A stretch of 64,000 nt of DNA from Blepharisma stoltei ATCC 30299 (lineage: Eukaryota; Protista; Ciliophora), in assembly GCA_965603825.1 (NCBI GenBank), contig CBFDEM010000050.1, forward strand, positions 62,001-126,000, written 5' to 3'. A program made the position numbers and the translations under genes. The notes below the pieces were generated by a model. It was given only the letters and a program-made list of their open reading frames with translations. It had not been told where the DNA came from and searched no databases. Each line of letters opens with the position of its first letter. Position 1 is the stretch's first letter. Shown here one piece after another: positions 1 through 56,502 of the stretch.

Positions 1-3000
1 TTAAGAGTCCTTCTATCCCAGTCATCTGTAACTCTACCTCCATAATTGCACTCCCCAGCTAAATAGTTTAGGGCTTTATAAGGAATTGTTGTGTAGTTGT
101 CTATCATTAATTTCAGCTGTCTCATTGATATATTTAAATCTGAATCATTAAACTCATACTGCACATTCCACCCTAGCGCTCCAAATTTCTTTCTTTCCCT
201 TATCAAGCAATGGAAAAATGCTAACCCAAAAAATAATTTATGCCATTCCTCTGGTTTCTTGCTGCTTTCATATAGCAGCTTGTCCTCTTTTGACATATTA
301 ATCCTCTGATAAATGCTAATTAAATTATTTTTCAACCCTTTTGGAGGCTCATGTGTAATTTTTACTCCTTGTTGTAAAATTGTGATAGGGAATTTTTCAT
401 TACTTTTACAGGTCAGCCACAGTCTGAAATCAGGATTTATTGTTACCATTTTTTTTTCTCTGTCGGTTATAAGCCTTTCTAATAGTCCATCTAAATCTGG
501 CATCCATGATAATGCTAAATGACAGTTCTGCAACAGCACCCAGCTTCCTGAACTAATAGATTCCCTTATAATCCTGACTGCTTTTTCACCTTGAGCTTTA
601 CCTAAAGACAGTGAGGTCAAATTCATGTTATTTTCTGAGGCAAATCTTTTTAGGATAGATTGAGGGTCATTCCCACTAGTTAATATAAAAATTAACGGTG
701 TCAAAGGCTCGGATTCTGATAAGGCGTTTTCTAAGCTTAATAATGGAGGCTTTAAATAAAATTCCCCTAAATATTTTTTGATAAATGCATAGATAGCTTG
801 TGTCACATTTTCTGGCCTGATTACTCTGTACAATAGCAATTTTTCTATATCAGAATAAGTTTCTTGGCTATAAGGATCTGGGAGGTCTTGTACAAATTCG
901 TCAAATTCTGGAATTTTGGTGAATTCTCGGGTCGACAGAGAAAACTTTTTCCACTCTTCTATATTATTTTGAATATTTTCTTTAATTTGGGAAAATGCTG
1001 ATAAATAAGAAAGCTCACAAATCTCGTCCCAGACTTTGTCCTCAAAAGCTTCTTTAAACTGATTAATCGGGTGCTGTCTGGTTTCGTCTTCTGAGGTAAA
1101 CCCGCTAAGCCCAGTCAATAAAAATCTAAACTCATTCGAATCTAGCAGCCCATCATGCTGGAGAAGCCTAATTGCCATAAGAAAACTGAATAAAAATTTA
1201 TCCTTTTCTGACAAAGACATACAAATGCTTAAAAATAGCTCCTGTCTGAACGTCGATATCAAATTTTGTATCCTGGTCTGTATATTTTTTGAAGCCTGTG
1301 CCTTTCCAATAGACCTCACAAATAGTGAGCTAAACCATTCTAATGAGAAAAAATACATCGGGTCAATATTCACCATATCAGACACACAAAAATAAAGGAC
1401 TGAGCTTAAATCAGCGACAGGTCTATAATTGCTTTGGAATTCAAGAATTCTTTGTTCATTAGTCCTAGAGGTCTGCAGCTTTTTTTCTATTTCTTCAGCA
1501 GTGTCTTTAGAAACTGTTAATTGGTTAATCAGATTTTCGTCGTCTAAAATGGTATCTCCAGCTGATTGTAGCATTTTTAAGATCTGGTCTTCGATTTCTT
1601 GAAGTTTTTTCATAAAACTGGCATTTTGAATGACCAGGAAGTTTCGGTCTTTGGACTCTTTTGGAAGCTCTTTCATACAGACTAAGGATAAAAGCTGCTC
1701 GATGAGACCTTCTTGGGTGATGGTGAAATTTAGAATAGTGACACGGGAAGCGATTTCTGGGCCGTAATGAGGGTTTACTAGGCGAGTTGCCATGTAAAAC
1801 TTGAAGCGGGGGTCACACTGTTTTTGGGTATCACCGATTTTTACGAGATTTACACCGTTTTCTTCATAGAAATTTTTAGATAAAATAGGATCAAGAATTG
1901 GGTCAATTTTTTCGTCGACATTTTCTAAAATTAAAGTGGCGCCTACAAATAAGGCATTTTCCAAAGTTGTCATAAATTCTTCGAAAAATGGCTTTGTCAC
2001 TACAAGCTGGTCTCTTTCTTCTTGAGCTTTTTTCTTTAAAAATTTGACTGCTTGCCCTTGTGGGTCTATTATTAGTGGCCAATGTTTGGACCTTTCAATG
2101 ATCAAGGCATTTTCAATGGAAATTTTATCGTTTGGTAGACCATATAAAATCCAGTTTTGTATCAGAAGAGGGTCACCAACCACGTCTTTTAATGAAAAAT
2201 CTTCTGAGCAGGTGACTGATTTCAGGCTTGAAATATAAGGAATCCACTGTTTTTGCACTATTTGGTCTCTATAGCTGCCAATAAAATTCCCTAAATATGA
2301 TACAACCCCTGCTGACAAAACGATATCCCCCAGCAGATTTTTCATATTTTCCGTAAGCTCAGTTATCCTTTGTGACCATCTTTTCCTTTCCCCTCCCAAT
2401 TTCTCTATAAGTTTGACAGCTCTCGCCATTTTAAGCTCACATTTTTCAATATCAGATATCAATTGTTGCTTTTTGGCGTCTTTTTCTTCAAATTGCAGCT
2501 TAAGATTCCTTATTTGTTCTTCCACACCTTTAAGCAGCTGCTCTTTTTCTTGGAGAATTTTGAATTTTTCTGCCATAGTGTCGTTAGCTTTATTAAGGGC
2601 TTCTTGTTTAGGCTTTATATCTTTGCTGACATTAAAGTAATTTACCATAGCCATAACCCATTTACAGAGGCCTTCAGCAGCGTTTGATGCATTTTTTACA
2701 GTGCTGGGCTCAAATTTGGGGTTCGAGATATAAGGTTGTAGACGGTCAATTACTTCTTGAGTCAAGCTGTCTTTATTGAATTTTTTTAGTAATTGGATGA
2801 ATTTGGGATTGTTCATCATTTTTTTGCCGGCTTCAAAGAAATCGTAAATAAATTTAGATTTGTCGTTGGGGTCTGGGATTTTTATAGGCTTTTCTTGGTT
2901 TATTATGACGACAGCTTCTACGACAAGCTTGACTGCTACAGGAGGGTTTAGCATTTTTCTGACTTCATTGATTTCTTGTTTCTTTAGTGTTTTAAGGGCT

Positions 3001-6000
3001 CGCTTGGCTGCATCTAGCTCTGGAAGCGCCAGGCTTAATTTTTCTTCACACTCCTGCTTCATTTTTTCGGCAATTTCTGCTTGTACAGCTGACTCTTGTT
3101 GTTCTGCTGCAACTAGACTTCGAGTTTTATCAGCCTCAGCGTTTTGCCGCTGAATATTTTTCATGATTTCGTCTGTTTCTCTTGCACTTTCTATTAGAAC
3201 AGGCTTAAGCTCAATTAATTCTTTTTTGAGCTGTTCTACAATTTCTTGAGTATCGTCTAATTTCTGGACCCCAATCGTATATTTTTCTCTAAGAGCCATG
3301 GTAGTTTTCTTTTTATACTCATAAAGACCTTTAATATTCATGAGCAAATGCAAAAAGTTAGCAGGAGTTGCATGATTTCTTCTCATAGTTTCTATATAAT
3401 AAGTTTCAGAAAATTCCAGCACACTCTGATGGATATAAACACAAGTTTTATCCATTACTTCTTCAGCGTCAGTCCCAGTCAAAATTCCGCTTTCCCTCAC
3501 ATACTGTTTTGCTACAGTCACTAGTGCTTCTTCCGGCCACACATTAAATCAATCTATCGTACAGCAATTCACAAATGACGGAAACTGCCTTAACTTTTGA
3601 CGTAAATTTTCCCCTGTATCTGACATACTAAGCACAATATGAAGATTTTTCCTGCAATTTTTAACAAATTCCTCCCATCTCTCAATAGAAGTTTTTATTG
3701 AATTTCCTCTTTTTTCTCTCATTTGTTCAGCTATAAAGTCTTTTTCATCCGGAGTGTACAGATTTGGGACTTCTCCTGAGTTCAAAATATTATTTATATT
3801 TTCAAAATAAATATTTTTGTTTAAATCAGTGTCTTTTACTAGAAAAACTTGTTTTTGATTTTCCTGCCCAGCGCTATTAAACAGGTTTTTTAAGTCTTCT
3901 TTTCATTCTCCTATATCATAATATTTCGACATTTGTATTTGGAAAACATTATATTCCTGTATAAAAGCTGCAAGCTTGCATAAAGAAACCCTTCCGCTCC
4001 CTCCTATTCCTATAAGCAATGCATGCCCGCTTGGCAATGAAATTATCCTTGATATCCTTATAATATGATAAACTGCGTAGTCAAACATAATAAGTTCAGC
4101 ATTTCCTTTATGCTTAATACTATACTCATATAGCACCACTTCTAGCCTTTTTCTAGCAGCGTCTATCGTACTGACTTCTTGGTATACAGGCTCTTCTATA
4201 AAATTACAAAAAATAGGCTCATGGCCGCCTGTAATATTATCATAGTCCTCATGCATCCAATGCTGGAAAGTTTCTTTGAGTTTTCCAATAAAAATATTTT
4301 TGTCTTTGTCGTTAATAAGTCTGTCAGAAAAAACTCGTAAACATTCGTGGATCCAGAGCCGATAGAGGACTTCAATTATAGGAATTTTTACTGATGGGAC
4401 TGAAGTAATGCATAAGCAAATATTGGTGATGTCTCGCAGATTAAAGGTATAGTGGCTTTTAGCAGGGGTGGGAGGCAAGGCGGTGAGTACTTTGTGGTAG
4501 ATGTCAATTGTGGCGGATGCGATAGAGATTATGGCACTTTTAACAAATTGGGAATGCTCTTGGAAACCGAGGTGCAAGTAAGAGGTAAAAATATTTTCTA
4601 AGGATTCTTTGTTAAATTCTGTAAAATCAAGTAAACAAAAATGACGAGTCATTCGTGATGAAATACGGTTACGGCCACCACCTGGATGTCCCATAGCTCC
4701 TAAATATATCATGTCTTCTAGTATTTTTAAATCACATGTTTCTCTATCAAACCACTCACATCGATCAATAGCTTGCCGTAATATTTCAATAGCTGGCTGT
4801 GCACCATATTGCTCTTTGGCAGGCATATTTAGGTCATCAATCATGACAATACAATGTTTCCCGAGCTCAGGGCCATAGTAGCCTTTTTTCCTTTTAATTA
4901 TTTTTGACTCAATAATATCTTGAACTTGATTGCAAGATGATTGGGCACTTAACGTACTCATGACATTTATATTTTTCTGTGGGTCAAGCTCATATATAAA
5001 TTTCTTAGCGATGACACTTTTACCAGTCCCAGTGGCTCCTGTAATAAGCACATGGTTTCCTCTTGGCACCAGCTTATTTAGCAGATACAAATAAGCAGCT
5101 GTATCTTCAGTAGGGACAATTAGCGAGCTTAGCTCATGGACTTTTTCCTTAGGAGCTTTCAGCACCATTTCATGCCAAGTCGACCACAGCTTTTTTTCAT
5201 AGTTATAATACATAGAAAAAGCATTGTTTTTATGGTAAATTTCGTCAAGCTCTTTAGAAGCATCAAGACCTTCTGCTCCTTTTCTACCTAGACTTCTAGA
5301 ATAAAGGTCACTTAAAAATTCACTGAATTGGCTTCTCCCATTTTCATTGCTTATACACCCTAAACTCCAGGTCAACGCAAATAAAAAAAAGCACAACACC
5401 TCAGATTTTTGTGCTTTTCCTATATCTTTAGCATTCAATACAAATTCACTTGTCAATAAATTTTCTTTTTTTGTGTATCTCTGGGTCAGTTTGCGTAGCG
5501 GGGTTCTGCCTTGGTCTACTACTGAAGAAAGTCTAGATACTTGTTTCCTTACGATTGAGCCTTGGGCAGTCTGCTTACGATTGTATTCAGTAATATCATC
5601 ATTAAGCTTGGCTTTACTTTTGCTTGATTTTAGCAGCAGTGCTTCAAAAACCTTTAATAAACTGCTGACAAGCCACAGTTTTGAAACTCCAAGTACTTTA
5701 GGGAAGCTTTTATTATTCATTACAAAATTCAGGCAGGGTTCTACAAAATATCCTACAATTTCTCTTATCAGACTTATATATGCTGGAGCTCTATAAGCAA
5801 TTGGCAAAGACTTTAGCCATTTTTCAAAAATTACTTTTCAGCCTAAGACGTCGTCTTGGTCAACATAAATCATCCCACATCTGCTTACGGTTGCAGGACT
5901 AGCATGATCTAAATTTTCGACTTCAAAGAGCATGCTGATCATTGGGGTAAGTTTAATGATTTCTCCACTGCTGAGACAAAGCTTTTTATTGTCATCAAGC

Positions 6001-9000
6001 ACTGTGTTCATATTTTCTATCCAAATAGCATCGACTGGCCCATCCATAATAAGCCATTTTAAGTTGTTAGTTTGGCTTTCCACAAAATGCAGGAGGTAAT
6101 GGCTGAGGATTCCATAGACCCATTCTCGGTTATAGGGGTTGGCATCACCATAGAGCTGTTCTAAAGTGACTGATTTGGGGTTTATTCAGACTATTTGGAC
6201 TTTATTAGCTTTGGGATCATCAAAAGCATTCTTCATGCTCAAAACTTTTTCTAGAACTTTAATTATAGACGACTTTCCAGACATTGCATTTCCTACAAGC
6301 ATCATTCCATGCCTAATCTGTATAATATCATAAAGCTGCAATACTTTAGTCACAAACTCTTTTTTCCACACAAGCCCAAGCTCTTCTAATACATCATAAA
6401 TGAGTGAGTTCATTTCAGAATTTTCTGCTTCTTCTAATTCAATCTGTGGGAATAAATCACTTGTGATGCCTAAAAACAGTGGAACATCTTCAATTAGGAA
6501 TTTTGGGACATTACTATCTTGTATTGCTTGCAGAACAATTTGGTCTTCGTCTTCTTCTGGCCTATCCCTTTTTAAAGCTCCAGCTCTCTTAATAATTGTG
6601 CTTACAGCCCTCATCCCATAATCATAATGCTTCTGGCTGCTTAGCTGCTCACTTGCTAATCTTAAGCTTGTTATAAATTTTACTGCAAGTCTTCTAGCAT
6701 CTTTAAACCCATAGGAATACAAATAAATTTCTGCTATCATGGAATAGTCAGGAATCATCATAGCGACAGGTCTAAATAATGCTTTTAAGTTGTCAGGAAG
6801 TTCAGATCTCCCTGCATACCCAGGGTTCATAGTAATAAAAATAGCACAGCTGTTATCAAGCTTAATCCAGTCATCCTCAAACCTGAATTTCGGCATATTT
6901 TTCATAAGCCCGACCTGTATCATCATAATTTGTTCAGCAATTACAGAAAGGACTTCTTGCTCTATTCTATTAAATTCATCAAAACAAGCCCACGCGCCAC
7001 AGTGGCAAAGTCCTATAAAGAACTTTGCCATTGAGATGTGGTCAAGTTTATCTGAGCAGTTAAAGACGACGCATTTTTTAGCAAGGGATTTGGCAAGATC
7101 TTTGGTGGTTTCTGTTTTCCCTGTACCAGCAGGGCCTTCTGGAGCGCCCCCTAAATTGAGACGAATAGCTCCCATAAGAGTACGATAGCATCTGTCAGTT
7201 AAAGGTGTCATTACAAGTCTTCCTTGATTTCCTAGGTATTCGTAGCCATATTCGCGCTCTGTGTCGATCATTTTGACTGAGACTGTGTCACTTTGGAGAT
7301 AATATCTGAGATGTTGAAGCCATTCAAAGTCACTGATGTCTTTGACTTTGTTATTGTATAAGCTTTCTATGACGTCTTTATTGTGGACGTCAAGGACGAC
7401 TAATGCACTGATGGTAATCCTGGTTTCGTCTGAGAGGTCTTGGCGGACAATTTCTACGATATCAATCAGTCGATCTGATTCTTCTGATAAGAGCTTTTTC
7501 AAGGATTCATATCCATTTTTAATAGCATCCTCACAGTTGTTTGTTCAAAACACCATATTTAGTGCATGTATCAGCTGTGATGGCCAGCTTTGTATTCACT
7601 GAAGGTAGCCTTTATTTCCTTTATCTGCTGCACAGTTAACCATTAGCTTCCTCAGCGTTTTTTTCATCATTTTTTCAATTTCATTCATCCATTCTTCTAC
7701 ATATTTAAACTTTTTTTCTTCCTTATTCTCAAATACAGAAATTTTGTCTAAAAACATGACTTCTTCTCCTTCAATACTCTTCATACCAATTATATCATTT
7801 TCATCATTAAATACAAGCGTATTAATGCCTTCAAAGCATTTTCCTATATATTTTTGCACAATATCTAGTTCTCTTGCATTTGAAAGAATTGCTAAAAGTT
7901 CTTCATTTGCAAGAAAATAAAATCTCCCGAATGCTTTTCGCTTGATATTAAGATAATCATTTAAAGATTTCATAATAATATCAAGGGTGCTGTTGCTGTA
8001 TTTTAGCTGCTCATGGAGTTTTGGGTTGCTAAATGTGACTTCTAGCACTAATGGGCTGTAATTTACTTGATTCATCATAGTTTCCCACATGAAATTAATA
8101 TGCCCAAACTTTCCAGCTTGTTCTGGCAGCTCATTTGATATATCAGGGTTCATAAAAATAGGTGCTAGATATATCCAATACCCCTGCATTTTTTCTCATT
8201 CATCAAGAATATCTTGTAACTTCACAAGCCCATTTTTCCAGGCATGCATTTCTTTCGCCATAAACTCAATATAAGGAGAATTGCACATAGAAATTGTTTT
8301 GACGAGGTTATCGTCAATAAGATCCCAAATAGGCTGATTGTTCTCGATGATGAAGATTTTTGTATCTTTGTAAGGAACTAATCGGAATTTCATGTCGTCC
8401 CATTCTTTTTCCATTTTTATTTTTGCGTTTTCTAAGGCGAGTTCTCTTGTCGCCCTTTCAGAAATATCCTCAATGTCATCTTGATACTCCATAATTCCTT
8501 GCTCAATAAGTGTTTCCATAGAAATATTCAGATGTTTGGTTAAGCTTAGCCCAGTTTTCTTTTGTAGCAATTCCCAATGTCTATCTCTTAGCCCAGGGTT
8601 TCTTAAATCTTTTATAATCGGAACATAAGGAGCAAACTTATTAACCTCTTCAAGCAGCGAAGTTGTAAGTTTAAGGCCTGCCGGCTGATCTTTAAAGGTA
8701 TTTCTCTGCATTCTAGTAAGCTCTGTCAAATACAGCTCGATTTCTGCATTTATTGATTCTCTGTCAAGCTCTCCTAAGTGTCCTTTCATCCATATAGGAA
8801 GATGCTCAAAGAAGTCTCTGATATAAAACCACAATTTACAAGATGGAGTAAATTCTAATTTCACTGAGTCCAAAACTTTGAAATCTGTGCTTCGGATTCC
8901 TACAATCCCTTCTCTTACATTAATAACTTTGCCAAATTCAATAGCTTTATCAATTCTGTCCCTTAACGACCCAAATGCATTGCTGACTTCTTCGAACTTT

Positions 9001-12000
9001 TCTATATCTTTTTCTTTTTTCAAGTCAAATAATAAGTCACGAATATCTTCAATTTCTTTAATTATAGCATATTGGCTTTCAGTCAGCTGTACTGCAAAGT
9101 CCCTTTCTTTTAACCTTATAGTCCTTTCACATGTTTTCTTGTACTTCATTGTTCGTTTGGCAAGTCCAAAAGCTTCCCAAGTCCTATAATAAAGATCGTC
9201 ATCTATACGGATTCCATAGTCTTCTAGTGTTTCAGTAATCCCAAAAAGCTGCCCTAAAATGTTACTGACGTATTCTAAACGTTCCCCAAGATGGGTTGCG
9301 ATGAAGTTTTTCATGTCGTTGAGCTCTTCTAAATTTGCAGGCTCGTGGGCTATGATTTCAATGATTTCTTTTTCTTGTTCTTCTACCTTAGCGACGTGGT
9401 CTTTTGCTTTTGTTAGCATTAAGGTTTCAAGCTCTGTTAATATTTTTTTTATTTTATTTTTTAATTGTTTCTGAACTTGGTCAATTTTAATCACAAAAAG
9501 TCCACAGTATAACCGTTCTTTTTTCCCAAAAATTAATTCAAGGCTTTCTGATGCTTCTTTACATCTATTAATTTCATAGTCAATTGCTTCAATTTTGAAT
9601 TTTTGCTCAAATTTCTGCTTTAGGCCTTTGACAGACAGCCCTATAAGAAATTCAAAAGGTTTCAGCATCTGTAGCAAGCTATAAGGGACTGTTCACAGCT
9701 CATCGACAAGTATTTTTATTTCATTTGTGACGTTAAATACAAATTCGTCGTTGTCTTCTACAACTCTTATAAGATTAGGGTCTCTGGCAGCACCTAACTC
9801 ACTAGTTTCAATGCTGGGGACTGCTTGGATTTCTTTGGTTGCAGAATATATGATATCATCAATGGCCTCTTGGATGTCCTCAAGACTAGGGTCAATAATA
9901 AAATTCCCATCGTTTTCAGTTTTTTTTGTCATAAGAACGCATTTAAAATAGGGGCGTTTTCGGTTTTTTTTATCCCATTCTTCGTTGGTGAATATTTTGA
10001 GCATTTCTTTGGACGGGATTCTTTCACATGGAATGCCGATATTCATAGAAGTGAAAAGCATATCTTTAATTTCGTGAAGCTGATCACGGAGATTTAATAA
10101 TGATCGCTCTAAGCATATTCTCATTTCACGCTCAAAGCCAAGATTGCAAAGACAAAGTAGCTTTCTCAGCCTTACAATAATTTCTGGTGCTAGCTGGTGT
10201 TCTAAATCAATGCTTTGATTTTCATATGCCCTCGCCATTATTTTTGCATTATTTCTCCCAATTCTTTCTTCATTAGCTTTATTGATGATATCTTGTATTC
10301 CAAACTGTGTATCAAACATAATATTTCTAAGCTCTCTTATCGTGTTCAAAGTCTCTACCTTATGCATTCTTACCATTTTTTCAAGCTTATAAGGTACCAT
10401 ATAGAATGTATTAAAAAGCATCAAATTTTTAAATTCAATAATCTGCTGGTTTTGTTTTACCAAAATATTTAAAGTATCAGGAAATGCTTGATGCAGGTTT
10501 TCTGAAATATATTGAACTCTTTCCCAGAAATCAAAGCCCAGCTTTTCTATTACCCCTATTCTATTTGTGTCATAATTTTTTTCGCTATAAGGTATGAATT
10601 TTTCAGGGGGTAAAATTTCGCAGAATAAATCTTGTTTTTCTTTATTGTATGGGAGATCAGCTTCAAATTCCATTTTATGCTGGGCGTACATGAAATTTTC
10701 TTCTACTTCGTTGATTAGACTGACTATTTGTGGAGGGTTTAATTGGAATGGATTTTTCATGATTTTTGTTGTTAAGACTATAGGAGCTAAATGATCGTAA
10801 TATCTATCTTTATATTCATCTATGCTGCCAAGGCCAATTTTTTTATATTGCATTGTTTCTTCTATTAGATGGGTAATTTCAGATTTTCATAGATGGTTTC
10901 GTGGATCATGGTGAATATGTGCTGGATACCTACGGAATTCCATTGGAACTCTATAATAATTTAAAAGCGAACTATTAAACTTCGGCTTTAGACGATTTAT
11001 TACAGCTTCAACCATTCTTAGCGGCATAGAAACAGTCGGGGACGTCATTCCTGTGATAATATTCGTATACTTCATAATAATTTCAGCTAAATCTCTGAAT
11101 TTTCCTGCAATTTTCAGTCTTTCTTCAAAATGCGCTTCAGTTTCATGCAAAAGGCGTAAATTGATCCTTGATACATTTTTTTCGCTTCCATTAGGCCATA
11201 ATACAACATATCTATCAATATCATTATTATACCTCAAAATTTCGCATTCTTTCCACTCATAACTTCCATCAGGATAAAACCATTTGGAATATGCCTTTGC
11301 TTTCCCATACCTTTGTTTCACACTTTTTATAAACTCTTCACCAGGCCCGAGCTCAGACTCAGGGTCATACATTTCTAAAGGCAAAAATTTGGTATTTTCT
11401 GTTCTCCCTATTTCTTCTATGGCTCCAGCAATAAATACATTTAAAGGCGCAGTTACCGTGAACCCTGGGTTTTCTTCATTTGGGTCTCTTTTTCTTGGTA
11501 CATTAGAAAAGTCCTTTTTTTCAATTTTTTCGTCAAATTTTTTAGTCTCATTAAGCAAGTTTGTAGGGCTTAGCTGCTTAATTTTAGATGGACTCTGGGC
11601 AGTGCTTGGTCTTGACGAAATTAAGCCTCGTGTTTTGGATTTTCTTACAATATAATCTGGCTTCGGCGCTTTGCGAGGTTCTCTATTTCTAGCTGCTGTC
11701 CAATCTTGTATAGGTGCAATCCCTGATTTTCTGATAATTCCAGCTGTAGTAGGCCTTGATGATGAAAATAAGCTGGAATACCTTGAATCAGGCCTTGGGG
11801 GAGCTTCATCACTGAGCATTGCTAAGCTGCTTGAAGTCAATAAATGAGGTATCTGTGGCTTTGTGATATTTCTTAATTGAGTTGTTAAAATAAGCTCGCC
11901 TTGGGTTTCTTCATTTTGTTCATCTCTGATAGGACTGGTTTTCGCTGAATCTCTTGAAAATAGTCCTCTGTTTGTAGGCATAGGCCTGGCTGAGTCTCTG

Positions 12001-12323
12001 GAAAACGTAGGTCTATATGTCATTATATTAGGCATGCTTCTTTGTGAAACTAATGTTGTAGAGGATGATAAAAGGCCCGTTTGCATAAATTCAGACAGAA
12101 GCATTTCACGAGAGGGGTTTTCTTGTAAAGTCCGAGAAAAGACTGCAAATTCTCCTGGGCGTGGAATAACAGGTCCTGATCCGCCTGATGTAATTTTTTC
12201 TAAAGCTTCGTGCTTTTGTTGGACTTCTTGGAATTTCAGGTAGTTTGAGACTGCAGCTGAGTGTCTTTGGTATCTTGATGACTTGGGCCTGTTGGAGTGT
12301 TTCTTCTTGGGTGGTTCAGTCAT
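1..12323 (-). CDS. Axonemal dynein heavy chain, DNAH1-like inner-arm type (3' end runs off the window)
   Basis: Eight track ORFs (10887..12323 to 3549..3785) share one frame and are separated only by TGA. AAA1 P-loop [21 protein letters not shown]; AAA2 [32 protein letters not shown]; AAA3 GATGTGKS; AAA4 GIGGSGR; [13 protein letters not shown] at the window edge. N-terminal FLPLEMYD...W..CEILRY...VSRINL resembles DNAH1. Confidence 0.95.
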
Positions 12324-12443
12324 ATTTTAAAGTTTATATAAGTTACAGTATTTTTGAATTTTAGTTGTATAGCAGAATAAAATCTGTTTCTATATAAGAT
12401 AGAGGTTAAAATAGCTTCATTTATTTCCATTATTAATTATTTC

Positions 12444-46081: not shown

Positions 46082-47014
46082 ATGAATTCATTTAGAGCAA
46101 AGAGCACTAAAAACTTCCAAGGCGTTTCCGTGTCTAATAAAATGCCACATATCCAAGACTACACCTACATGAATGAGGTTTCCTTAATCAATACGGACAT
46201 TTACAAAGACATTAATAAAAAATCCAAAGAGCTAATGATAGAAACAGTCAGCAAGTCAAAAGACCATATTATTAGCATCATCAAAGACCTTAAATTAATG
46301 ATTTCTAAAGAAGCCACTTCAAGCTCAACTCCCCCAAAAAAATTCACTTTTCTATATAAAAATCTGCAGATGTCTATAATTTCTTTAAAGTCTGCCTTAC
46401 AAAATCTAGATAAAATTCTCAAAGAAATTCTTATAACAAACCAAGTCTGCATCTCAAAAATGCTGGACTCGATTGAATTAGGCTTGATAGGATCTTCAGA
46501 ACGGCTAGAAGAAATAATCAGTAACATTAAACCTTTGCAGCTTGATATTAAAAATGTCGATGGGGTGTTAAATATCAAAATAAAACATTTAAAGAGATAT
46601 ACTAATGCCAATAGTTTATTTACATACAAATTATCAAGAAAGCGTTATGAAACTATGCTGCTAAAAGACCGAACTGAAGAAACATTATCATCTTATAAAA
46701 CAATTGGTAAAAGAATGTATAAGCTGAAAAAATACGACACATCAATTGAGTATCTTTTAAAGTTTATCGAATACCAAAATACGGAAAAATATAGTAAAGA
46801 TACATTTGAGGTGCTATCTTTATTAGGAAAATCATATTATATGTCTGGAGAATATGCAAAAGCCCAAGAATATTTCAAAATTGCAGAAAAAACAATTGAA
46901 GATATATGCTCTTTGCAGTCGTCAAGAAGAAAAAAAATTGAAGAAATGATGGCAAGGGTATCTAAAAAACTTGAGCTTATAAATGAGCAAGAATTATCAA
47001 ATTTTTTTAATTAA
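46082..47014 (+). CDS. Hypothetical protein with C-terminal TPR-like repeats
   Basis: IGKRMYKLKKYDTSIEYL / LGKSYYMSGEYAKAQEYFKIA. Confidence 0.75.
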   Translation: MNSFRAKSTKNFQGVSVSNKMPHIQDYTYMNEVSLINTDIYKDINKKSKELMIETVSKSKDHIISIIKDLKLMISKEATSSSTPPKKFTFLYKNLQMSIISLKSALQNLDKILKEILITNQVCISKMLDSIELGLIGSSERLEEIISNIKPLQLDIKNVDGVLNIKIKHLKRYTNANSLFTYKLSRKRYETMLLKDRTEETLSSYKTIGKRMYKLKKYDTSIEYLLKFIEYQNTEKYSKDTFEVLSLLGKSYYMSGEYAKAQEYFKIAEKTIEDICSLQSSRRKKIEEMMARVSKKLELINEQELSNFFN

Positions 47015-47077
47015 GCTCAATAAGGCCATTCATCATTGAATTACCTTATAAGTATTTAATTAAACTTAAATATATCA

Positions 47078-49804
47078 TTAATTTTTCAAAAAAATCTTAA
47101 AGGGACACACATAAGCTGCCAGTTTCTTAAACGAGCTTTCAAGGTCTTCATAAACAGTATCCATCAATATCCCTCTTTTCGTCATTTTTACTAGCTCATT
47201 CAACAAATTCCTCCCAAACGAATGACTATTTACCGAAAGGACCACAAGATTCGCTGGCGTGCTCCTTATAATTTTTTCTAATTTTTCAAGCTTTATATTA
47301 CTCCCTTTTTCTTCTCCATCTGTAATCACAATAACCCATTGATGATTTTGTGTATCATTTTCCAAATAAGAATCCTCAAAATAAAAATTACAGGCAATAA
47401 TTTGTTTATAAGCCTCCGCAATCCCATCTAATAAAACCCTTTTTTCTTTTCTTAATTTATATTCTGGGAATTTTATGTCTTTTGAAAGCCGCTTGGTAAG
47501 ATTGAATAAAATTCTACAAGAGTCATCAAAATTAATTATAGAAAGACGGTCTTTAGGATCTACAATGTCTTTTATAAAAGTTTTAAGGTTTGCGTGCATA
47601 TAGGAGCTTCCTAATTTTGTGTCCATGGCGATTACGATATCTTGTTGCCTCTCTTCTACTGTGGTTAAGGCTGCATTTAGTTCGTCGACTGGTAATCTTT
47701 GGCTTTCGAAAATAGAAATTAGTCTTTTAATGGACTGTTTTCTGATTGCTGGGTCGAAATATTGATAGTCTTCTATACAAGATAAAAATAGATCAGCTGC
47801 AAACATAGTTTTTGACTGATTTTGTAGGTGGACTCCAAGATAGTACTTTTGCCTCTGCATCAAAATGTCTTGTAAGGAGTCAACTGGCCTTTTTTCTAAT
47901 AATGATTGGGCTTCATCAAGTGCTGCTTCAGGGTTTCTAAAATCAGCTAAAAGCCCTTCTGCGTAATCTATTAAGCAAAACACAATTTCTGGAGAATTTG
48001 GCTCTTTTCTATAAAACTCCAAAGCTTCTTCAAACAGATTTATAGCTTCTTCTGTTTTAACTCTAGCAAGCATCATTGCTCTCGCTGTTTGGGATTTTCG
48101 CTTTGCTAATAATTTTTCAGAAAATCCTTCAATTTGTTGGGCAAGCTGATAAGAATTATAATAGCTTGTGGCCGCTTCTAAATACTGATGGTTTCTCAAA
48201 TGAATATTTCCAAGCTCCAGATAGCACATTTCCATAGCTTTTTTATTGCCAAAAGTGGAATACAATGATAGTGCTTGAGAGTAATTCATGATCGCGTGGG
48301 TTTCTTGTTTAAAATTATCAGTATCTTTAAGCTTGAGAACGAGTCTTAGCCTATCAAAAACTTCATATAAGGTTTCCATTTCTGGGGGGCCTGGAGTATA
48401 TTGTTCTTTTATGTCTAAGCCTAAATCATGATTTACAAGCCTTTCTAAGATTTCTAATAATTTGTCAATTGGAGCTACAATAGATGAAGCTATGTTTTGG
48501 GTCATATACCAGCATAATAATGCAATAAGGACTAAAACCCCTGCAAAAATCCCAGTTTCTATGTACATCATATTTTGGCAGTCATCTTTTAGACCGTCAA
48601 TTTTTTCATAAACTTGACTTTCTGGTGTGACTATTCCTATAGAAAGATAATGAGTCATAATTGACTGAGAAAATGTCATCCTCAAGTTTATAGGGGAAAC
48701 TGCAATTATCATTTTTTCGCCATTTTTATAGTAATTTCCTAAAGAGCTTTCATTTTTGCTGAATTTTGGTAAAATTTCATTTGTAAAATAATCGACTTCA
48801 TCTTGATCAGGATTTGAGCCAAATTCAAGCTGCTGGATTGAAGGTATTGTAGGATTATTTCTATTTAAGTTAGGGTGTAAAACAACTTTTCCTGTTGTGT
48901 CTAATGAATAGCAGTACGATGACGTATTTTTCAGCGAATTTATTATATGGGTTTCTATCGTGTCAAGATAATAATCAATGCATACAGCAGCTTGCATTGC
49001 GCTGCTAATCCAAATTCCTCTGCATGCAGTTTGGCCTAAATTATTTGTATTGGTAAATAAATACGGCTCAGTTAAAATTGCAGCTGTTTTATTGGTCGCA
49101 TTTTTTGTATCTTGATACCATGGTCTACACCTTGGGTCAAACTGAGGTGGCCTATGAAGATTATAAACGCATTTTCCTGAATAGTCTCTGTATACAATAA
49201 ATCCGCTATATTGTGATGGATTTGAATAAAATAGCCCATCAGATGACCATCCTATATAGTCTTGTGCAAAATATCAAGGTCTGATCTTCCCAATTGATGC
49301 TATGGGCCTTAAAAAACTGTCAAAAATAGCGGAAGACTTCAAGTTCAAGAGAGATTGGGTAGAAAGTTGTTGTGGAAAAATCTGATATGGATTTAAATAT
49401 CATACAGCAGCTTCATAGCTTTTATTTGTAGATGAGTCATAGCCAGGCGGAAATGACTGTTTTAAGTCAAATAATTGCCCATTTACATAATTATTGGAAT
49501 CATCAAAATAAGGCTTTGTTTTTAGCTGCTTTTGGTTGTATTTATCAATTAAGGCTCCTGCAATGATCATCAGGTTAGCAGAGTATTGAATAACTGAATA
49601 TGAGCCAGCTAATGCCATGTACTCGCTCATATTTAGCAAAGCAACTCCTTGACTATAGGTCATATCATCTATATAATTGTCTAATCATTTGGGGTATTCA
49701 ACATATAAAGGAACAGCAGCTATGACTCCAGTAATAATTATTCCAGTCATTAAAGGCAAAAGAATGCCGCATAAAATTTTTCGCCTGAGCCCTCGTTTAC
49801 CCAT
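47078..49804 (-). CDS. Membrane sensor: TM-dCache-TM-HAMP-TPR-vWA (~908 aa)
   Basis: One frame from ATG 49804 via three TGA. TM1 ILCGILLPLMTGIIITGVIAAVPLY; Cache motifs YIGWSSDG, FDPRCRPWY, TEPY, VCID, LDTTGKVVLHP; TM2 IFAGVLVLIALLCWY; HAMP IVAPIDKL...EMETLYEVFDRL; TPR helices; vWA DIVIAMD, IINFDD, VIVITDG. Confidence 0.82.
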
Positions 49805-49915: not shown

Positions 49916-49988
49916 TCCGCATTTGTCTAGCTGGTTAGGATATCAGGCCTTCACCCTGAAGACCCGGGTTCGAGTCCCGGATGCGGAA
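49916..49988 (+). tRNA. tRNA-Glu (anticodon TTC), with C at position 33
   Basis: Acceptor TCCGCAT/ATGCGGA; anticodon stem TCAGG/CCTGA with loop CCTTCAC; T arm CCGGG-TTCGAGT-CCCGG; oligo-T terminator downstream. Confidence 0.93.
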
Positions 49989-50873: not shown

Positions 50874-51992
50874 TTAATTATGCGAAGTCACTGGGTTAAG
50901 GTTGCAGTTTGGGCATCTAGGACGGAAAGATTTCAAAATCAGCCACTCATTGAGGCAGCTTGAATGAAAAATATGACGACAAGTCGTTATTTTTACCTTA
51001 TCATTTTCGGATAGTTCGGTTAAACATATAGTACAAACTGATTCTCCTAAAAATTCAAGATCTGAGGCAAAAGCTTTTTCTTCAAGCCGCTGGTGGATAG
51101 GGGGTTTCAGCATTTTGAAGCATTTGGAGTTTAGGCAGCAATATTTGATAATTCCGATTATTACTAACTTTGAAAGGCTGAAGCCAACTATGGAACAAGA
51201 GATAAGGACAAAAATTGTTAAGGGCCCGATATTTTCGTCATCTGACTGATGGGCTTGGCAGGATTTTGGAGGATTTTTTAAACTGTTACAGTAAAGCTCT
51301 AGCAATGAGCCTTTTTGGCTATCAAACTCCTCTCCATTAATGATAATTGTCGGAGCTATATATGAAAAATTTCTATTTTTCTCAAATTCCTTCTGCAAAA
51401 TTCTATTATCATCAACCAATATATCAGTCCCATCAACAGAATCATTAACACATTTTAATATTTCTGATGGTGATTGCCCAACAGCATACAAATAAATTTT
51501 ACTACAAAGGCTTGCATAGCTATATCTGCAATAATTTGAAATTAACTCCAAATATTCAATAAAAATTCTTGATGATTCTGAATTTTTTCTTGTTTTTTTC
51601 AAAAAACAAAGAGACCGTAAAGACTCAATTACAAGGTCTCTGCCTAAGTTGATGCTTTGTGAATCTTTTAAGCAGTATCGTCCTGAGGCAATACAATCAT
51701 CAGTTATTTCAGTACCATTAAGATTTGAATAATACTCAAAAGATAGATCTAAAAAAATTCTGTCAGAAAGAGTTTTTTTCAGGACTCGATACAAGCCATT
51801 AATATATTTCCAGTCTCGGATATGATCCCCTGTTAAATAAAGAAAGATATAAGGAATGTCTGATTTGAATGGCTCACTAATTATGCTGGTGTTTTGTATT
51901 GGTAAAGAATAATCATTTGCCAGAGTTCGATTTTCATGCAGAAAAATTGCAAATAAATAGCTCATTAAATTTAACATTATGGCTTCCATCAT
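50874..51992 (-). CDS. Vacuolar-sorting-receptor-like luminal domain + TM + RING-H2 E3 ligase
   Basis: CIASGRYC, GRDLVIESLRSLC, DNRILQKE, PTIIING, YC.SLKNPPKSC; TM IFVLISCSIVGFSL; CTICLTEL...CRHIFHSSCLNEWL...CPNC. Confidence 0.78.
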   Translation of the reverse strand: MMEAIMLNLMSYLFAIFLHENRTLANDYSLPIQNTSIISEPFKSDIPYIFLYLTGDHIRDWKYINGLYRVLKKTLSDRIFLDLSFEYYSNLNGTEITDDCIASGRYCLKDSQSINLGRDLVIESLRSLCFLKKTRKNSESSRIFIEYLELISNYCRYSYASLCSKIYLYAVGQSPSEILKCVNDSVDGTDILVDDNRILQKEFEKNRNFSYIAPTIIINGEEFDSQKGSLLELYCNSLKNPPKSCQAHQSDDENIGPLTIFVLISCSIVGFSLSKLVIIGIIKYCCLNSKCFKMLKPPIHQRLEEKAFASDLEFLGESVCTICLTELSENDKVKITTCRHIFHSSCLNEWLILKSFRPRCPNCNLNPVTSHN

Positions 51993-52191
51993 TTTTAATT
52001 TTTGATTATAAAAGTGACTGCAATGCACTTTATATATTACATTGAGATCAAAAATCCTCAAAAAATGCCTCAAAACGGAGCAGGAAAAACCATTATGAGA
52101 TATAACGGTGAAGTAATTAGAATATTTGATTTTTTTTAAGCATAATTAATATATTATTTAGATTAAATTTTATTTTCAGCAAAGTTGATAT

Positions 52192-55657: not shown

Positions 55658-56239
55658 AGCCTGTTTTTAAATCGATGCTTTAATCAGATCAAAATAGAAA
55701 TAATTTTACGTATTAATTAGCCATTATTTAGCAATTTTTGATTTATTAGCCAAAATTATTGTTGCTTTAAGCTTCAAATATAAGAAATGCCATAAATTTT
55801 ATATTTTAAAGTTTGTAATTGAACAAATAAATAAACCTCACTCATTCCAAAAATATTAAATCGCTGTAAAATAATCAAAAATATATAGATTTTTTTATTT
55901 CATTTCATAATGAGCTTGCTAGTACATCATGCAAAATACTATTAAAGATAAATAAATATTAAATTTGAAGTAGATTAAAATTTCTCACTAATTTGGAAAT
56001 TATTTCGTTGATCCCTAATTTAAAGTGACTCTTTATATTATTTAAAATTTATAAATTAATCTAGTAAGATTGCTATATTTTAAATAGTATAATTATTAGG
56101 CAGGGCAACCATTAAAGAACTCACATATAAGTCTTCTTTTAATTTTTTTAAGAATGCTTTGAAGAAGCCTCAGATGAGATTGCAGCTAATAGAAGTTATG
56201 AGAATTTATACAAAAATCACAGCTTTTAGTTTCAGACAT

Positions 56240-56283
56240 GACTGTTTGGCCGAGCGGTCTAAGGCGGTAGCTTAAGGCGCTAT

Positions 56284-56314
<31 letters not shown>

Positions 56315-56319
56315 AGTCA
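56240..56319 (+). tRNA. tRNA-Leu (anticodon AAG)
   Basis: GACTGTT/AGCAGTC acceptor; TGGCCGAGCGGTCTAAGGC D arm; GTAGC-TTAAGGC-GCTAT anticodon arm; variable arm; GTGGG-TTCAAAT-CCCAC; T6 terminator. Confidence 0.95.
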
Positions 56320-56502
56320 TTTTTTACTATTATTATTTTCTGAATTTTTGGTATACTTAAAGGATCATTTTTGCTTATTAATCATAATGAAGATATATAT
56401 CATTTAACGATTATAATTTAACTCGCTACTTTTTTCCTATTTGCAATTAAATATTTTTTAATTCTATTTTATTAGTAGTTTTCTAAACTTATATTCTTAT
56501 AT

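Follow-up and report, generated by a model that had tools for sequence, protein, structure and literature searches.

The gene at 47078..49804 on the reverse strand of a 64,000-nucleotide stretch of the Blepharisma stoltei genome (the window, whose numbering is used throughout) is intronless and encodes a long receptor subunit of 908 amino acids with the domain order TM-dCache_1-TM-HAMP-TPR-vWA. On balance we judge it reasonably likely that this protein does the signalling in a heterodimeric membrane receptor that senses amino acids or close analogues, and that it belongs to a family which eukaryotes inherited from Asgard archaea; its partner would be a short paralogue that ends after HAMP (TM-dCache-TM-HAMP). 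We found no description of the family in the literature searched (most subscription journals lay outside its scope), and neither an archaeal signalling-protein census nor a Cache review mentions it in the parts available to us. The long/short receptor family is apparently undescribed.

Gene structure and expression

Under translation table 4, with UGA read as tryptophan, the gene is a single 908-codon open reading frame. Tables 1 and 11 place three internal stops in it, all UGA, at residues 40, 135 and 177, and trying table 6 likewise leaves three, in keeping with an earlier note on this DNA which held that the protein emerges only with UGA as Trp. On the reverse strand, the codons concerned are those of Trp40 (49685..49687; ORF translation and orthologue comparison), Trp135 (49400..49402), which is TGG in a syntenic orthologue and Trp in a standard-code homologue, and Trp177 (49274..49276), at a position that is not conserved. 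This reading holds across the window, where a 4108-amino-acid ORF at 3-12326 on the reverse strand, dynein-heavy-chain-like by eye, requires nine in-frame UGA codons, and B. stoltei has been reported to read UGA as Trp and to have introns of 15-16 nt (PMC9942806). A public protein record (P0001) is identical over all 908 residues and served for full-length work, other searches having used stop-free pieces.

Contigs guessed to be RNA-derived, from four runs of one study, cover 47068-49782, end at the intergenic gap and contain no splice joints, and a single 2212-nt contig among them reaches from the ligand pocket to the vWA domain, which argues against the two separate transcripts that the earlier note had considered. 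The gene is probably transcribed. Hidden 15-nt introns were looked for, and none was present in the read contigs or indicated by the syntenic orthologue (contig L012, also UGA=Trp), which aligns gap-free at 67% identity. The orthologue comparison gave a pN of 0.20 against a saturated pS of 0.81, and 23 of the 26 read variants in the gene are synonymous and three non-synonymous; the gene is real and under purifying selection.

Around it, a convergent gene at 46082-47011 on the forward strand encodes a 310-amino-acid TPR-containing protein with little or no coverage by RNA-like contigs, and this synteny is kept in L012. A divergent tRNA-Glu(TTC) lies at 49916-49988 on the forward strand, 112 bp upstream of the receptor start codon, and a tRNA-Leu(AAG) at 56239-56320 on the same strand; a reverse-strand gene at 50877-52145 encodes a protein in which a thioredoxin-like domain of the vacuolar-sorting-receptor type is combined with a RING finger at the C-terminus.

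Domain architecture

All features that follow lie on the reverse strand. A short basic N-terminus precedes TM1, a signal anchor at residues 10-31 (49712..49777; hydropathy and an AlphaFold 2 helix at 5-68). The extracytoplasmic dCache_1 domain spans residues about 36-410 (48575..49699) and has no vWA insertion, as judged from Pfam, a sequence match to PctA and Foldseek, and TM2 occupies residues 413-435 (48500..48568; hydropathy and AlphaFold 2). HAMP follows directly at about 437-494 (48323..48496) as a helix, a 16-residue connector and a second helix, and leads into a TPR array of the LGN/kinesin-light-chain type at about 496-716 (47657..48319; Pfam, profile and structure matches). The C-terminal vWA domain at 721-899 (47108..47644; Pfam, structure matches and conservation) has a degenerate MIDAS, and in the tail (47081..47107) a clade-specific C-P-x-K replaces the family's terminal Glu motif, as seen from conservation.

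In Pfam scans, dCache_1 (PF02743) was recognised with E 6e-7 and 29.7 bits, under the curated cut-off of 45, TPR_12 with E 5e-7 and VWA with E 8e-4. HAMP (PF00672) reached E 0.077 with this protein by itself and 0.0075 with the highest-scoring member of the family, a weak match that is joined by the AlphaFold helix-connector-helix and by the HAMP-conserved residues P445, D460-L461 and E475. The full-length AlphaFold model (mean pLDDT 90.9, pTM 0.59) contains all domains in this order, namely a dCache fold with a stalk helix, HAMP, TPR hairpins and a Rossmann-type vWA, and the TPR-vWA module modelled alone reached pLDDT 93 and pTM 0.85. Foldseek aligned the dCache domain to PctA with a TM score by target of about 0.6, and a PDB sequence search found PctA with E 5e-8. 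The vWA gave structure matches with Z up to 18.9 and the TPRs matched LGN/KLC-type arrays, each separately; matches in the structure search covered one domain each, with no solved structure joining TPR and vWA in this way. Within the dCache domain, the pairs C212-C226 and C261-C275 are probable disulfides.

Hydropathy and domain order, with the vWA following TM2, HAMP and TPR, predict that the TPR-vWA module is cytoplasmic. Neither the Pfam scans nor the model contained an MCPsignal, HisKA-HATPase, GGDEF, cyclase, kinase or SpoIIE domain. The architecture that the earlier note had read from the letters is thus borne out: two TMs around a dCache_1-type domain, a HAMP right after TM2, TPRs, and a C-terminal vWA with a non-enzymatic output, with both the Cache and the HAMP fold recovered by profile and structure prediction.

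Distribution and origin of the family

By features and structure, the best match in the Atlas was a 953-amino-acid Thorarchaeota cluster with Cache, TPR and vWA. A word-index search returned only four relatives, and a full HMM search, used in its place, returned 177 representatives at E < 1e-30, many of them full length. Named members come from Fabrea salina, Hodarchaeales, the jakobid Stygiella, Trimastix, Platysulcus, Mallomonas and the chytrid Rhizophlyctis, so that the eukaryotic range takes in ciliates, a jakobid, a metamonad, stramenopiles and a chytrid. A contig that is heterotrich-like and uses the standard code (P0004/L011) carries close homologues, and Fabrea belongs to the wider clade. 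Of 400 Asgard genomes in GTDB, 129 had a match at E < 1e-45, about 100 of these near full length, and roughly a quarter of the 400 carry end-to-end homologues; Lokiarchaeum ossiferum has one long/short pair. Ciliate and Asgard profiles align across 838 columns, a colinear homology of the whole chain. A sample of 1,204 genomes from four bacterial phyla, in which the top three candidates per genome were scored, yielded no full-length copy. A restriction to Asgard archaea among prokaryotes was ruled out by the long gene in three of 301 Thermoplasmatota; the one of these three loci sampled in the tree (L036) was placed among Asgard sequences.

Five further members, with both subunits present, lie on intronless giant-virus-like contigs (L013, L146-L149), some of which carry genes typical of protist giant viruses (tRNA ligases, a translation factor, dynamin, D123). 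One virus-like member was scanned against IMG/VR and gave no match, so the giant-virus label reflects gene context. The suggestion of a ciliate receptor class is not supported, because the family also occurs in Asgard archaea, in eukaryotes of several other groups and on giant-virus-like contigs.

In a tree of the region shared by both subunits, long and short proteins separate with support of 99/98. The eukaryote-side short proteins (ciliate, virus-like and the N-halves of fusions) form one clade (97/94), as do the long ones (100/97), which are nested in the archaeal long proteins and adjoin Heimdallarchaeota-labelled sequences (96/82); the long proteins of the virus-like contigs group with the chytrid protein. 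Monophyly of the archaeal long proteins was rejected (p-AU 0.007 under LG+G4). These trees used LG+G4 rather than a mixture model, on data with compositional bias and many eukaryote-side rows that carry no taxon name, and model violation or ancient transfer may lie behind the eukaryotic placement. The simplest reading of the topology is that the duplication took place before Asgard archaea diversified and that the pair reached eukaryotes by inheritance, and eukaryotes probably obtained the family from an Asgard-archaeal ancestor. The few Thermoplasmatota and virus-like copies indicate that the gene pair can move horizontally.

The output module and its loss of consensus residues

Of 113 family members, 87 have an intact MIDAS, and 80 of these 87 end in a hydrophobic-Glu-x-hydrophobic motif, versus 3 of the other 26; the family consensus also has an Asn ladder in the TPRs. 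This conserved Glu, which follows the last vWA helix, may be likened to the internal ligand of integrin I-domains. The association of MIDAS and tail looks strong in the raw counts but comes down to three to five independent pairs and loses significance once phylogeny is controlled for; with so few independent events their joint loss is suggestive only, and we treat it as a lead.

The Blepharisma protein keeps two of the five MIDAS positions (D728, K730, G732, R789 and D829, compared with DxSxS...T...D), as the earlier note's description of a degenerate site implied, and belongs to a 15-member clade (support 100) in which MIDAS, Asn ladder and terminal Glu are all lost. Judged by comparison across the family, the degenerate MIDAS is a derived state. 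Since the three features disappeared together in one clade and one paralogue, L004 on contig 57, retains them all, the protein could be an output-dead co-receptor or decoy, which would bind ligand and signal only by pairing or competing with an intact long subunit such as L004. We regard this as unlikely: the clade has fixed residues of its own across TPR, vWA and tail (E525, E530, K570, E616, R688, Q801, N768, P901 and K903), identity with the orthologue is still 72% for TPR and 62% for vWA although synonymous distance is saturated, and a decoy could simply drop the 410-residue module, as short subunits do.

Several other Blepharisma long genes differ in structure. Paralogue L005 has two 15-nt introns and entered alignments and trees as a joined translation, in which the cut at the first intron is displaced by one base but stays in frame. 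A second, fast-evolving long class (L102, L100, L103, L105, L106) is without both the amino-acid motif and the MIDAS, and each of its genes is interrupted behind the stalk by a stretch with an in-frame stop, probably a tiny intron; L102 (G000:C50:46624-51537) lies about 12 kb before the window. L010 (G000:C2:693598-696981) is an isolated vWA-only fragment about 20 kb downstream of L002, nearly identical to the end of that paralogue and probably a partial duplicate.

The short partner subunit

In archaea, the short gene directly follows the long gene in 38 of the 39 loci with room for it, and on all five giant-virus-like contigs the two lie at most 4 kb apart. Nine proteins of 1520-2130 amino acids, one from Mallomonas, combine short and long subunits in one chain, and the six fusion N-halves tested all group with short subunits. 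One archaeal subclade has lost the dCache domain from both subunits jointly, leaving proteins of 575 and 150 amino acids. Blepharisma itself has about 10 long and about 9 short genes (L101, L104, L107-L111, L115 and L122), the latter falling in the short clade with support of 97/94. Archaeal adjacency, the fusions and the Blepharisma partner orthologues together point to a heterodimer. In Blepharisma the long genes are not linked to the short ones, so it is from these comparisons that we infer the pairing of this paralogue.

That lack of linkage would also suit a homodimer, in which ciliate long subunits are partner-free and two TPR-vWA modules move relative to each other, and bacterial dCache-HAMP receptors are indeed homodimers. 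We think this distinctly unlikely, given that about 9 partner orthologues are kept in Blepharisma and that the partner is linked, fused or co-lost with the long subunit elsewhere.

Among the Blepharisma short genes, L101 and L104 stand in tandem and keep the full amino-acid motif, and several have in common a conserved motif in the C-terminal tail that did not appear in archaeal short subunits. Two of the fusions, P0143 (L125) and P0150, have an extra N-terminal region of about 500 amino acids; that of P0143, the one scanned, is a PARP catalytic domain and a possible enzymatic output. The Cache-less archaeal variant (L129-L131, L144, L145) adjoins a six-TM gene that could supply input.

Two further genes recur at the archaeal loci, one for an FG-GAP/BBS2-like propeller (25 of 42 loci) and one for a SpeA-like arginine decarboxylase (20 of 42), often abutting the short gene. 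The propellers are FG-GAP/BBS2/ITFG2-like, some with a C-terminal zinc ribbon (loci L126-L145 and L017-L035). Both proteins are candidate effectors in archaea; the Blepharisma genome has no clear orthologue of either. The neighbourhood hints at amino-acid or polyamine signalling, and the frequency of the decarboxylase fits amino-acid signalling.

Comparison with known receptors

The input half of the protein resembles the bacterial dCache_1AA chemoreceptors (PctA/B/C, CtaA, Mlp24/Mlp37, Tlp3), which have the same TM-dCache_1-TM-HAMP arrangement and the R, W, Y and D of the pocket, and the dCache-HAMP kinases, cyclases and SpoIIE phosphatases share this module. Unlike these bacterial receptors, the present family has a TPR-vWA output in place of an MCP, kinase, cyclase or phosphatase, and a dedicated partner subunit that lacks an output. 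By profile and structure the closest TPR type is that of LGN/Pins and kinesin light chain, and the vWA may be compared with the integrin I-domain and other vWA adaptors, but here TPR and vWA sit under a receptor HAMP.

Among eukaryotic proteins, alpha2delta and CACHD1 also combine the dCache_1 amino-acid motif with a vWA. Their vWA interrupts the Cache and lies outside the cell, whereas here the Cache is contiguous, TM2 leads into a HAMP, and the vWA, behind the TPRs, is predicted to be cytoplasmic; the earlier note had already pointed to this difference in vWA location. Gumerov et al. 2022 stated that all eukaryotic dCache_1 proteins carry a vWA inserted in the Cache (PMC8915833); the family is a counter-example to this rule. 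The shared domains, and weaker Foldseek matches to alpha2delta and CACHD1, would allow an auxiliary subunit of the same kind, modulating the trafficking or gating of a channel or other membrane protein. This seems quite improbable, because the protein has one dCache, two TMs and a HAMP, with a vWA that lies outside the Cache on the presumed cytoplasmic side; because its best sequence and structure matches are bacterial chemoreceptor domains, Foldseek ranking these, with PctA, CtaA, PctB and Mlp37, above CACHD1 and alpha2delta; and because the conserved archaeal neighbours include no channel gene.

The ligand pocket

Aligned to PctA, the protein keeps four of the five dCache_1AA motif residues, R227, W229, Y248 and D277, with a short spacer. 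The carboxyl-binding half lies in FDPRCRPWY at 49115..49141 (reverse strand, as are the two that follow), where the earlier note had placed it, with F222 (PctA Y121), R227 (R126), W229 (W128) and Y230, as identified from the PctA alignment and the published motif (PMC8915833). TEPY at 49061..49072 supplies Y248 (PctA Y144), and VCID at 48974..48985 supplies D277, equivalent to the amino-group contact D173 of PctA; the note's reading of a kept Arg, Trp, Tyr and distal Asp with Phe for the first Tyr agrees with this alignment. The motif as defined by Gumerov et al. 2022 allows some variability (PMC8915833). Tyr occupies the Y121 position in 89 of 120 family members and in the syntenic orthologue, and the position of PctA D146 is also Phe here. 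With both positions changed to Phe, affinity or ligand class may differ from PctA.

Tryptophan and leucine antagonise the Blepharisma pheromone gamone 2. The note's speculative link to this pheromone is highly improbable. In its favour, gamone 2 is derived from tryptophan and bears a carboxylate (PMC9942806, PMC9542385), a pocket of this type takes up Trp in PctA, and Phe at the D146 position reduces negative charge; but gamone 2 is a substituted lactate that has no alpha-amino group (PMC9542385) while the pocket keeps the amino-binding Y248 and D277, an identical pocket sequence occurs in the standard-code heterotrich-like homologue P0004 and in one Asgard protein, and the family is much older than the pheromone.

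Discussion

HAMP domains work as two-chain four-helix bundles, which leads us to infer that long and short subunits of the proposed heterodimer pair through stalk, TM and HAMP. Ligand in the distal Cache pocket would shift TM2 and repack HAMP, as in bacterial receptors, and the change in HAMP would reposition the single TPR-vWA module such that a cytoplasmic partner is bound or released, with no catalysis. The working parts of the ancestral switch were probably the metal site, the peptide groove of the TPRs and the tail with its terminal Glu, and in the heterotrich-type clade the output surface may have been rebuilt as a metal-independent docking site. In Blepharisma, long and short genes might combine into a chemosensory or nutrient-sensing repertoire, with the receptor facing either the medium or the food-vacuole lumen. 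As a fuller scenario, which we offer tentatively and hold to be somewhat short of an even chance, the family would be a pre-eukaryotic heterodimeric amino-acid sensor with a HAMP-driven, non-enzymatic TPR-vWA switch, passed vertically from Asgard archaea to LECA, expanded in ciliates into a combinatorial chemosensory or nutrient-sensing repertoire and captured as an intact gene pair by giant viruses of protists.

The published view is that eukaryotic Cache domains were transferred from bacteria (PMC4822843, PMC8915833). Against it, the family is a candidate for an Asgard-derived eukaryotic signalling system. While its input module is well known, it would add a new kind of HAMP output, whose signalling is predicted, and an asymmetric receptor design that can be tested in cultured Lokiarchaeum ossiferum, with its one pair, and in Blepharisma. 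To our knowledge, the small-molecule receptors of ciliates and of most free-living protists are largely unidentified; the about 10 long and 9 short genes of Blepharisma offer a concrete repertoire, whose ligand-binding domains are soluble and directly screenable.
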